From the sequence record OR413578.1: 64,000 nt of DNA; one strand, given 5' to 3'. The position numbers were made by a program, and so were the translations under genes. Under the pieces are notes generated by a model, which had not been told where the DNA came from, ran no database searches, and saw nothing but the letters and a program-made list of their open reading frames with translations. Positions 10,131 to 13,550 of the stretch are shown one piece after another; within the stretch, counting starts at the first letter, position 1; the number at the start of each line of letters is the position of its first letter.

Positions 10131-10640
10131 ATGTTTACTGCGCCAACCGTGCAGGTGGGGCAAGGTCTTAACCTGGTGGTACACGACCAGCGGTTAATCG
10201 ACCTCTGCGACACAAGCATAATTACTGCGATGATGGACCATAACCCTTTAGGTGACTACGGAAATACCAGCGAGATTTTGGCTGTTGCTGCCGTCCTCCG
10301 TCGTATTTACGGTCAAATAACCATCGTAGATCTCTGTAACTTCATTGACAACCACAGAGATTTAACTAAAGGGTTGGTCGCACTTACTCAAGATGGGGTG
10401 TCAAGTTTTGACAGTTCTCTTGGTAATTTCCTAGACATCGGTTCCGGGTTCGACTCCGGGCTAATGTTCATCACTCGTGAACGCTACGTCGCCGTCTGGG
10501 AATTTCTGCAACGCATGGGTGTGCATGTTCCTGCGAAGATCATGCATTACCAAACTTACGACCTGAATATTTTCGGGGAGCCGGGGTTATGGATAAAACC
10601 AGTACACCTTGGCCTTGATGGCTATACCATCAAGTGTTAA
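10131..10640 (+). CDS. Hypothetical protein
   Basis: SD AAGGAG before ATG 10131; 169 aa; followed by a terminator. Confidence 0.75.
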   Translation: MFTAPTVQVGQGLNLVVHDQRLIDLCDTSIITAMMDHNPLGDYGNTSEILAVAAVLRRIYGQITIVDLCNFIDNHRDLTKGLVALTQDGVSSFDSSLGNFLDIGSGFDSGLMFITRERYVAVWEFLQRMGVHVPAKIMHYQTYDLNIFGEPGLWIKPVHLGLDGYTIKC

Positions 10641-10647
10641 GTCACTA

Positions 10648-10673
10648 GGCGTACTCTCTTCGGGGAGTACGCC
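10648..10673 (+). terminator. Intrinsic terminator with UUCG loop
   Basis: GGCGTACTCTC-TTCG-GGGAGTACGCC followed by T-rich sequence. Confidence 0.8.
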
Positions 10674-11260
10674 AATCTTATTTTTTTATTTTTTTGGTTA
10701 CTTTTTAACCAACCGGTTAAAGGGGTCTGGGAAGCATCAGAAAACGATTAGGTGGTATCGATGTAGGGTAGCTCGTTTTTGGCAGTTTATCGTTTTCTAG
10801 GGTCGGTTACGTGCGTTTTAGAGGGGGTAATGTATCGAGACAGAGAATTTATTTTTGTCGGGGCGAGGAAATTCAGGGAATGGGGATTCAGGATTGTATG
10901 TTTTTTAACCAGTTATTAAAAACGCTCTAGAAAGCGCTAGAACGAGATTTAACTCAGACCCAGTACACTTGGGTTCCCTATACCGGAAAATCGCGCCAGC
11001 GGGCCGCTGAGAGCGCGAGAGTGCCATTCCCGTTTCGGTTCCGAGGTGACGGTCGCGGCCGGCGACGACGATCACACGTTGGGTAGCACTTCGTGCCATG
11101 TCTGGGTGAAAACTGGATCGTTCTGTAACCGACACACACTGTCGGTTACTTACGAGTTCTTTGGGTTGTTTAACTCGCTCTAAAATCCCCCTTAGGGGAT
11201 AATTTAATCTAATTCTCAAAATTTCTTTTTAAAACAATCACTTAGATTGTTTTTTAGATT

Positions 11261-11482
11261 GATCCTGTGGATCGGGTCGAAGACCCTTTCCTTATACGCG
11301 TGCGCGTGCGCACACCCGTATCCTCCAGGATCTTTTAAAATATATAATAATATTAAATATAATAATACCTTTAGGTATTATATTTAATTATTATAATTAT
11401 TTATATAAATAAATATATTAATATATTAAGATCTTAAAACGCGTGCAGGCGCGCGCGTGATCCTTATTAAGAGATCGTGATC
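11261..11482. other. Origin-like element: ~96% AT core flanked by 7 GATC sites
   Basis: 11333-11429 has 4 G/C in 97 nt; GATC at 11261, 11270, 11329, 11430, 11459, 11473, 11479; internal inverted repeat ATAATACCT-TT-AGGTATTAT. Confidence 0.5.
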
Positions 11483-11519
11483 GGACGGAAGACCGAGATT
11501 GTGTACCCTGTGTATTTTT

Positions 11520-12340
11520 TACGTGGTTTACCTATCGTGTGTTCAGACCACCACTCGATGTCCAAAAACCCATAGCTTCGGTGGTCGCCTCCCTGGTCGG
11601 TAGACTCTGACAAGTCGACCCACAACACCAACCCGTCCGGGGACGGATTTTTATTCCAACGACAAGCTCCACGAAAATCCCCGCAGAGGGACTCACTGCT
11701 GTGTGACTCACCGGCTCCTGGACGCCTACGCCTCGAGCCGGTAATTTTTTGATTACGTGAGTTTGTTGTTATATGCGAATAGCGATTGACCGCGCCAATG
11801 GTCCAATCACTTTTAAACCCTGCACGCTAGGGCTCCAAGTCCTGGGACTGTTACCCAGGACGCTTTTTCGAAAATACCTACCGTGGTGTCTTCGACAAAG
11901 CGCAATCTAACACTGCGTGATTTATTATGTTCTGGAAAACTTTCGCCGTGGAACAGAACCGGTGAGCGTCGGCGGGGATTCCGACAATCACCACCCATTC
12001 AGGTACTCGGTAAATAACCGGGCTATCGGCTTAAACGTCGAGGGCCTCGTTGGCACTGCAAGCGCCGGTGCATCCAGGACCGAGTTAGCCGTGGCAGCTC
12101 CAGAGGACTGGGCAGCGGAGAGACGTCGTTGAACTTACCTCCGATAGTCAGTCGCTGATTCCGCTCTGGGGTGCGGCCAGATTAAAATCGAATTCGGCGT
12201 TGCGTCGAAGCGTGGGTCTGCGTGTAGAACCGCAGACTTGGGGGATGATCTCCAGATGGAGGTGGTCAAAATATCTTGACTGCTCGGAACAGACGAGAGG
12301 GGTGGGTACTCCCGTTGTGAAACGCCAGTACCTGGCTGAT
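11520..12340 (+). ncRNA. Candidate long structured non-coding RNA region (strand uncertain)
   Basis: No convincing CDS; more than a dozen hairpins, e.g. ACCGGCTC/GAGCCGGT, GTCCTGGG/CCCAGGAC, GTCTGCG/CGCAGAC, CGTT-GTGA-AACG, long-range GCTATCGG/CCGATAGT. Confidence 0.45.
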
Positions 12341-12393
12341 TAAAATTTACAGATTCTGCGTGAGGTATGATAAACCAAACGGAGAATTAAACC

Positions 12394-12969
12394 ATGAACT
12401 TGTATCGCATCGGGTTTTACCGAAACGAGATGCCTGAATCGGTTTTGGTTGTCTTAGCCGAAAACGAGGAGCAGGCCAAATCCTTCTGGCCGGTTAGCGC
12501 AGAGCGTCCAGCGGTTGCGTGCTGCTACGACGGCGCTGTGTCTACCCCGATGGTTACGCCTGGGGTGGTTCTGAAGCAAGGCCGTTGGGATGATTATTCC
12601 CATCCCGGTTTGGAATTTGTTTCCGAATCCGCCAGACACACCTGGAATCTCACCACGGGTAAAACCAGAGTGTACTTCGGCCACCAAGCCAAGCAACCGT
12701 CGCTCATCAAGCTGTACCTGGTTTACAGCGACGTCGCTACCGAAGACTATGTCGACACCGGAATCATCGTCGGGGCAACAACCCCCGAGGCGGCATTCGC
12801 ACATTGGGACGGTGATAAACCCGGAATCGTTTCGGTCTGTGAGCTACCACTTGAAGCCGGTTTGGTTACGAACATCAAGTGTGAGCAAGGCCAGGAGCTG
12901 ACTTGGATGCGCCAGGATTACCTGACGGAAACGACATTCGAGTACACACCGAGGAAGGTGGCCCAATGA
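12394..12969 (+). CDS. Hypothetical protein with an internally duplicated domain
   Basis: SD GGAG; two related halves (MNLYRIG...VLAENEEQA and IKLYLVY...VGATTPEAA). Confidence 0.8.
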   Translation: MNLYRIGFYRNEMPESVLVVLAENEEQAKSFWPVSAERPAVACCYDGAVSTPMVTPGVVLKQGRWDDYSHPGLEFVSESARHTWNLTTGKTRVYFGHQAKQPSLIKLYLVYSDVATEDYVDTGIIVGATTPEAAFAHWDGDKPGIVSVCELPLEAGLVTNIKCEQGQELTWMRQDYLTETTFEYTPRKVAQ

Positions 12970-13457
12970 CGACGATAGCGTTCGATGGAAAAGTCTTAGC
13001 TGCTGACGGTCAGCTGACCCGCGGGTCGAATATCTGCAACCTGAACACCCAGAAGTTATTCATCTGCCCTTCTGACGAGGAATGGTGGATTACTGGTGAA
13101 CGGATTGTGGCGTTCGGAGTAAGCGGTGACATCACAGGACAGTTGGCCCTGCTGGAAACTATCCGCTTGAGACCTGGTTACAAGGGGTTAACGCAAAGCT
13201 CGCAGTTACCTGCGAAGATGGATTTTACTTTCCTGATGCTTCTGGCCTCAGGGAAAGCGATAGTCGGTGGGAAGCGTGAAGACGACGTGACGTTGTGGTG
13301 GAGTGAAGCCACACCACCTCTGGCAACCGGAAGTGGTTACGAGTATGCGTTGGGTGCGATGAAGATGGGCGCGAATGCGGTTCGTGCTGTTGAGATTGCG
13401 TCCGAATGCGATATCTACACCGGTGGTGAGATTAGCACTTACGAACTACGGAGGTGA
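12966..13457 (+). CDS. Ntn-hydrolase (HslV/proteasome-beta-like) peptidase
   Basis: ATGA coupling; N-terminus MTTIAFDGKVLAAD, then GSG..YALGAM and D..TGG, typical of the phage HslV-like family. Confidence 0.75.
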   Translation: MTTIAFDGKVLAADGQLTRGSNICNLNTQKLFICPSDEEWWITGERIVAFGVSGDITGQLALLETIRLRPGYKGLTQSSQLPAKMDFTFLMLLASGKAIVGGKREDDVTLWWSEATPPLATGSGYEYALGAMKMGANAVRAVEIASECDIYTGGEISTYELRR

Positions 13458-13460
13458 ATC

Positions 13461-13511
13461 ATGCGGGAGTCAGAAGCACGCAAGCTTGACCCCATCAATC
13501 GCCTGCGATAA
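13461..13511 (+). CDS. Putative 16-aa micro-ORF (MRESEARKLDPINRLR)
   Basis: Strong SD GGAGGTGA overlapping the upstream stop codon, just before the ATG; not in the ORF track. Confidence 0.4.
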   Translation: MRESEARKLDPINRLR

Positions 13512-13550
13512 CGGGGTAGCGCATCCGTATAAACACGTTTAAAGAATTCT

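Follow-up and report, generated by a model that had tools for sequence, protein, structure and literature searches.

The question raised by this locus is where DNA replication starts in the nucleus-forming giant phages of Salmonella and Erwinia. The window analyzed (64,000 nt) corresponds to positions 1-64000 of the genome of Salmonella phage SPLA1a (OR413578.1; 240,348 bp), a nucleus-forming, SPN3US-like member of Seoulvirus. A first-pass annotation described a 222-bp element in this window as an oriC-like candidate origin and stated that the origins of nucleus-forming phages are not defined. The searchable literature indeed defines none; a jumbo-phage review from 2026 is silent on replication origins, and other literature searches found none for this phage family. 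The phage nucleus has been shown experimentally for SPN3US and for Erwinia phage Asesino, and replication takes place inside it, which fits an element that acts independently of the host. Both of these genomes carry the element. Jumbo phages that form a nucleus serve as a major model of viral compartmentalization. SPN3US is genetically tractable, and with a candidate of 200 bp that has two invariant boxes the origin question becomes directly testable. If confirmed as an origin or as a packaging (pac) site, the element would also be a useful part for engineering these phages. The analysis below identifies it as the best candidate for the replication start site of this group.

The element is housed in a 1753-bp gap without annotated genes (10641-12393), which is bordered by two plus-strand genes of unknown function. 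The large terminase gene is annotated 4 kb upstream. Rfam and tRNA scans of the gap returned no family and no tRNA. Genes 5-8 beside the element contain no Pfam domains and match only PHROG families of unknown function, and no initiator candidate is found among them. The parts of the locus are listed in Table 1. Block A may be a promoter or a protein-binding site.

Between the gene 7 terminator and the element there is a gene-free stretch of ~500 bp (10674-11184), which is conserved with SPAsTU at the DNA level. Relatives have an extra gene between gene 7 and the element; a protein-level remnant of it was sought in the SPLA1a gap and none was found. A hairpin within the stretch (~11123-11150) has compensatory changes in phiEaH2. 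The stretch may be a small RNA or a leftover. On the other side, the gene 8 region (12546-12939) is mostly without contigs from two infected-cell RNA libraries, and 13019-13546 is replaced in one metatranscriptome contig. Therefore, gene content just downstream of the non-coding region varies among close relatives.

Table 1. Features of the SPLA1a element and its immediate surroundings (window coordinates).
Feature	Position	Strand	Remarks
Intrinsic terminator after gene 7	10648-10673	+	11-pair stem, 7 G-C pairs, T-rich tail; end of upstream operon; context, outside the element
Block A, A/T-rich word ending ACTTA (AAAATTTCTTTTTAAAACAATCACTTAG)	11218-11245	+	ACTT core and TTTAAA kept in the 10-phage alignment; motif occurs once in the genome
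Left outer GATC pair (11261, 11270) and small G+C hairpin with T-rich tail (11274-11286)	11261-11286	+	
Left alternating purine-pyrimidine CG-rich tract, ACGCGT-type repeats	11293-11315		Z-DNA-prone
Box C (TCCTCCAGGATCTTTT)	11321-11336	+	Most conserved word of the element; invariant GATC at left edge of core; occurs once in the genome
A/T core, 96% A+T	11333-11429		Least stable duplex of the genome; presumed unwinding/cruciform region
Central inverted repeat	11359-11384		12-bp arms, 2 mismatches, TT loop; perfect core 11362-11381
Second inverted repeat of core	11387-11422		arms of 18 bp with 2 mismatches, no loop
Right inner GATC (11430) followed by a self-complementary, alternating CG-rich tract (ACGCGTGC...GCGCGCGT)	11430-11459		8-pair stem at 11439-11458
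Box D (GTGATCCTTATTAAGAGATCGTGATCGG)	11457-11484	+	Three GATC (11459, 11473, 11479)
All GATC sites	11261, 11270, 11329, 11430, 11459, 11473, 11479		3 + 4 split around the centre
TTTTTTAC promoter-like word	11515-11522	+	Points away from the element, into downstream non-coding RNA region

All 240,348 bp of the SPLA1a genome were rebuilt from the window and four fetched pieces of the record, and this sequence was used for genome-wide ranking. The A/T core had been claimed to hold four G/C in 97 nt at 11333-11429. The count is correct (2 G and 2 C, or 93/97 A/T), and the next best window in 240 kb reaches only 72/97. The nearest-neighbor stability of the core is -87.9 kcal/mol per 100 bp, compared to a genome mean of -140.1 (sd 6.0). 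At 23 nt, the left alternating tract exceeds every other alternating purine-pyrimidine run of the genome, the next reaching 18 nt. The seven GATC sites in 222 bp, for which fewer than one was said to be expected, contrast with four in the next best window of the whole genome. Outside of the element GATC occurs 1.98 times per kb, which gives ~0.44 expected in 222 bp and a Poisson P of ~2e-6 (280-bp window). GATC is depleted genome-wide in SPLA1a, with 483 sites observed vs 937-1205 expected. Since four independent extremes occur together in 222 bp, chance can reasonably be dismissed as an explanation. Box C and box D each have a single copy in the SPLA1a genome, as does GTGATCCTTATTA of box D. 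In being single-copy, non-coding, located where the duplex is least stable in the genome and kept at one position among relatives, the element has the general features of an origin unwinding element.

Conservation in relatives had been proposed as a check, and the same architecture occupies the same slot in four genera (Seoulvirus, Erskinevirus, Machinavirus and Wellingtonvirus). It is carried by all SPN3US-group phages, SPAsTU, the Erskinevirus phages phiEaH2 and Asesino, the Machinavirus phages Huxley, Caitlin and SNUABM_4, and the Wellingtonvirus phages Wellington and SNUABM_11, downstream of the gp6/gp7 homologues in each case. Two genomes in IMG/VR and an Enterobacter record of 222 kb carry it as well. 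The neighboring protein gp6 is merely 48-80% identical across the carrier phages. A search of IMG/VR for related loci with gp6 returned SPN3US alone. A scan of viral and metagenome collections with the box C pattern gave mostly chance matches, and among the matches listed the A/T-core filter left only members of the known type.

An alignment of the element from 10 phages of these four genera gives a conserved order of block A, one to three GATC with a small hairpin, an alternating CG-rich tract, box C, the A/T core, a second ACGCG tract and box D. The box C word TCCTNCAGGATCTTTT is nearly invariant in all 10 phages. The box D word GTGATCCTTATTAMGAGATC is conserved in 8/10, and is followed by extra GATC sites at shifting positions. 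The A/T core ranges from 60 to 190 bp in length. In both phiEaH2 and Wellington, the element is the only place in the whole genome that has 50-mers of 47 or more A/T. The left outer region has its GATC sites and hairpin at the same place in most relatives, with a different sequence. Unbroken left alternating runs of ~15-25 nt, also of differing sequence, were judged by eye to be present in phiEaH2, Wellington, Huxley, SPAsTU, SNUABM_11 and SNUABM_29; in Caitlin and SNUABM_4 three ACGCG repeats replace the tract. The right tract is an ACGCG(C)GT-type palindrome in all relatives, and the right inner GATC is limited to the SPN3US group, Erskinevirus and Wellingtonvirus. A downstream structured region of 0.8 kb is conserved together with the element, as is TTTTTTAC ~35 bp past box D.

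Two records deposited as circular, non-mobilizable plasmids have the phage gene order around the element. One is Enterobacter ludwigii 'plasmid unnamed1' (NZ_CP134650.1; 222,441 bp; element at L261:2880-3130) and the other is a 'plasmid' of E. coli strain 98232 (NZ_CP173450.1; 221,873 bp; L262). The element in both has an A/T core of ~180 bp, a 26-nt alternating tract and the central palindrome of SPLA1a. Given this gene order, both 'plasmids' look like Seoul-like jumbo phage genomes. A preprint reports that Seoul-like phages persist in bacterial isolates.

Derbicusvirus (Derbicus, Phobos and CR5; L012:6470-6640, L013 and L014) has a different, nearly invariant element of ~130 bp in the same slot, with one GATC. 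It starts with GGGGGGATCAAGGGGGGATGGATAA, after which come repeated GAATGAATG and ATTAG words and the palindrome AATTGAT-TGT-ATCAATT. A TATATTAC promoter word stands behind it in Phobos and CR5.

The first-pass annotation also proposed a cruciform around a TT loop. The inverted repeat is present as a perfect palindrome, ATAATACCT-TT-AGGTATTAT, at 11362-11381. Every lineage compared has a central inverted repeat in the core with a 2-3-nt loop and a lineage-specific sequence: ATACCT-TT-AGGTAT in the SPN3US group, ATATCT-TT-AGATAT in Erskinevirus, ATATCCC-GTA-GGGATAT in SPAsTU and Machinavirus, and AATTATAT-TT-ATATAATT in Wellingtonvirus. Since the sequence differs and the symmetry stays, the symmetry has been kept through paired substitutions. 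The second palindrome is usually present in relatives, and that of SPAsTU is 18 bp and perfect. As single-stranded DNA, the SPLA1a core folds modestly better than dinucleotide-preserving shuffles (z = -2.66). Other lineages give z values of -2.73, -2.72 and -3.69, with weaker values of -1.59 and -1.06. The signal is modest because A/T-only sequence is prone to palindromes.

The GATC cluster is significant in 8/10 genomes (P from 3e-4 to 7e-8). Individual sites turn over while the cluster persists, and the sole invariant GATC is that of box C. Caitlin (3 GATC, P = 0.02) and SNUABM_4 (2 GATC, P = 0.1) retain the element with a weak cluster; therefore, the cluster is not indispensable. Genome positions 109435-110229 of SPLA1a code for an N6-adenine methylase of the D12 class (PF02086, E = 1.7e-52). 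The protein gives full-length alignments with E. coli Dam (E = 2e-53) and DpnII methylase 1, and keeps the DPPY motif and a YNGLCRYN segment. These matches suggest that it is likely GATC-specific. The gene is present in 8/8 genomes with the GATC element that were checked (SPLA1a and seven relatives) and in 0/3 Derbicusvirus genomes (Derbicus, Phobos and CR5). This co-distribution rests on one phylogenetic split and counts as one event. The element offers a possible purpose for a phage-encoded Dam methylase. GATC is rare across the genome despite the phage's own Dam-type enzyme, and in the loci taken from Derbicusvirus, whose genomes have no such methylase, it is rarer still, at 2-7 sites per 7 kb.

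The transcription context was assessed from assembled contigs of two RNA-seq libraries (X15 and X16) made from cells carrying a related phage, so that depth is indicative only and a gap in them does not prove absence. Near the core, the longest of the listed contigs start at 10530 or 10760 and stop at 11324 or 11329, which is the left edge of the core. To the right, contigs resume at ~11561-11565, the next listed one at 11565, and no listed contig spans the core. Judged from the X15 and X16 contigs, which are indicative, RNA bins from 10576 on are far shallower than the upstream gene bins, and bins at 11364-11560 are far shallower than both neighboring sides. The downstream non-coding region is well represented among the RNA contigs. 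Besides the strong terminator after gene 7, there are two more terminator-like hairpins at 11185 and 11274.

The word TTTTTTAC has 12 copies on the plus strand and 3 on the minus strand of SPLA1a, and most are 40-160 bp upstream of annotated gene starts. The plus-strand copies are at 11515 in the window and at genome positions 17997, 20977, 27206, 85208, 106745, 172918, 176532, 180321, 187658, 191983 and 233594. A second word, TATATTAC, which we take to be the phiKZ early-promoter word, has 8 plus-strand copies, six of them shortly before annotated gene starts, and one minus-strand copy. From their sequence and placement, the two words look like two promoter classes. Several TATATTAC copies occupy the next most A/T-rich spots of the genome. 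The layout at the element, with one transcription unit towards it and one away, presumably resembles that of mioC and gidA at oriC.

The best explanation is that the element serves as the origin, or the main origin, of SPN3US-like and related Erwinia nucleus-forming jumbo phages, in the form of an unwinding element that is driven by supercoiling and independent of DnaA. We give this reading a probability of roughly one half. From the observed anatomy, uniqueness, conservation, contig layout and methylase co-distribution, we infer how it might work. Negative supercoiling would open the A/T core or extrude its hairpins, and RNA polymerase leaving the adjacent outward promoter would reinforce negative supercoiling behind it. 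The CG-rich tracts could limit the bubble or absorb torsion as Z-DNA. A phage protein would bind boxes C and D and load the DnaB-like helicase of the phage. Inside the phage nucleus, the phage methylase would place N6-methyladenine on the flanking GATC sites, and this mark may tune melting or protein binding. Host DnaA would not be involved.

Some observations do not favor an origin at this locus. No classical iterons are found at the element. The phage encodes UvsX-, SbcC- and RuvC-like proteins, and these phages may replicate mainly by recombination, like T4 late in infection; if so, a fixed origin might matter little. Cumulative GC skew tracks gene orientation and the third-position skew of plus-strand genes has no two-arm pattern, so skew is uninformative.

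The chief rival is a P1-type pac site, at which the two GATC-bearing flanks would be recognized by the terminase complex, Dam methylation would gate cutting, and the first headful cut would fall in the A/T centre. The published P1 pac, which the first-pass annotation did not mention, is the closest precedent for seven GATC arranged about a centre. It is a packaging signal rather than an origin; it is 161 bp, has seven GATC-containing hexamers (TGATCA/G) and needs Dam methylation for cleavage, and P1 has its own methylase. The 3 + 4 split of the seven sites in SPLA1a follows this precedent, the phage has a Dam-type enzyme of its own, and the large terminase gene is nearby. However, the P1 hexamer fits only 1/7 sites (TGATCC, GGATCG, GGATCT, AGATCT, TGATCC, AGATCG and TGATCG), and the element sits in an unannotated gap instead of within a terminase gene. 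To our knowledge, extreme A/T richness and genome-minimum stability do not occur in characterized pac sites. According to the literature, the SPN3US terminase is T4-gp17-like with packaging thought to be sequence-independent and headful, and related giant Aeromonas phages have no preferred termini by PhageTerm.

The pac reading also draws on several public assemblies of relatives that start or end within the core. The break points scatter, however (11326/11362, 11360/11376, 11368 and 11423), and many sister assemblies break elsewhere. The record of EC001 is simply opened at 11423/11424, and that of Proteus phage 7 is without 35 bp of the core. Since the other break points scatter over 60 bp and one record lost 35 bp, the breaks are given little weight as physical ends. 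They are probably a sequencing or assembly dropout of extreme A/T DNA and not a defined end. Taken together, a pac function seems unlikely. The assemblies that begin or end inside the core (11326-11424) are those of SPFM2, SPFM16, SPFM17, Proteus phage 7, EC001, Lh1B, JN03 and SEGD1. The SPN3US record starts 36 bp before the element.

The element could also be a transcriptional boundary, or a supercoil-sensing insulator, that separates the upstream operon, which ends in a terminator, from the non-coding RNA downstream, which is strongly represented. The core and the Z-prone tracts would then buffer or sense torsion and control the TTTTTTAC promoter. Its position between the terminator-like hairpins (10648, 11185 and 11274) and the class promoter at 11515 is consistent with this role, as are the contigs listed from the RNA libraries, which end at its left edge and resume to the right, and the 0.8-kb structured region that is conserved with it. 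The other 11 plus-strand TTTTTTAC sites are without such an element, though, and the element that Derbicusvirus has there is a different one and just as conserved. An insulator would need less than single-copy invariant boxes together with a GATC cluster and co-varying palindromes. A boundary function is doubtful on these grounds.

A stricter version of the origin reading is that the phage Dam methylase sets firing. Fully methylated DNA would be competent, and fresh hemimethylated DNA would be refractory or differently bound. Such gating is rather improbable. If it were true, Seoul-like nucleus-forming phages could throttle their replication. It could also help explain why these 'virulent' phages often persist in isolates and are deposited as ~222-kb circular 'plasmids'.

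It is quite improbable that the element is a programmed fragile site, in which the palindromic core extrudes a hairpin or cruciform, nucleases of the phage (SbcC-like or RuvC-like) cut it, and the double-strand end starts recombination-dependent replication or concatemers. The genome's least stable DNA does contain conserved inverted repeats, some assembly break points are in or beside the two palindromes, and SPLA1a has genes for an SbcC-like protein, a RuvC-like resolvase and a UvsX-like recombinase. That SPN3US requires SbcC also favors this reading. The arms are nevertheless short and consist of A/T alone, so that part of the symmetry would be expected by chance (z ~-2.7), and the invariant boxes and the GATC cluster are left unexplained. 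A protelomerase-type site was considered for the TACGCGCGTA-like words and dropped, as these words are outside any long palindrome.

The preferred reading, an origin-type unwinding element, can be compared with four known systems, the first being enterobacterial oriC. The element resembles oriC in its easily melted A/T-rich region, its strong local GATC excess and the GATC-initiated, A/T-rich 13-mer-like words at the edges of the melting region. Two of these words had been pointed out earlier (GATCTTTTAAAA at 11329 and GATCCTTATTAAG at 11459) and both are present, with another at 11430; we take their likeness to the oriC 13-mer consensus to be partial. The flank repeat ACGCGTGC is likewise at both 11296 and 11439 as claimed. 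Unlike oriC, the core is far longer and A/T-richer and is flanked by alternating CG tracts, and the element probably works inside the phage nucleus. As the first-pass annotation had stated, no DnaA box (TTATCCACA-like, up to 1 mismatch) occurs in the 1753-bp gap, where the genome-wide rate would give 0.57 by chance. No IHF site is found within the element. The element has no similarity to any E. coli chromosome, the sole match being a phage-like 222-kb 'plasmid', and no SeqA or DnaA family match is found in the phage genome. These results rule out a relative of oriC, so 'oriC-like' does not hold in the sense of family membership. The rest of the earlier proposal stands in the form of a single-copy, cis-acting candidate with an unwinding core, possibly Dam-responsive, which is unique, conserved, without a spanning RNA contig and accompanied by the methylase.

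P1 pac is similar in size (~160-220 bp) and in having seven GATC in two groups around a centre and a phage-borne Dam-type methylase. It differs in that the centre of the element is a 97-bp palindromic A/T core and the hexamer is not kept. P1 pac is also within the small-terminase gene pacA and is cut by PacA/PacB, while the SPN3US terminase is T4-like with no small subunit known.

The T4 origins oriF(uvsY) and oriG(34) consist of a promoter and a downstream unwinding element, are primed by an R-loop, and are among several origins of that phage. The likeness lies in a lytic myovirus whose tools for recombination and packaging are T4-like, and in a non-coding element with promoter-like words and an unwinding region. 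Unlike the T4 origins, no transcript into the core is evident from the contigs, the clear promoter of the element points away, and the element is single-copy.

In herpes simplex oriS and oriL, an A/T-rich palindromic centre is flanked by boxes for the origin-binding protein. There is no sequence relation to the element, the boxes of the element are not a clean inverted pair, and no UL9-like protein was identified. The resemblance is in the design, since both have a palindromic A/T centre able to form a hairpin once opened, conserved flanking boxes and a nucleus-like compartment.
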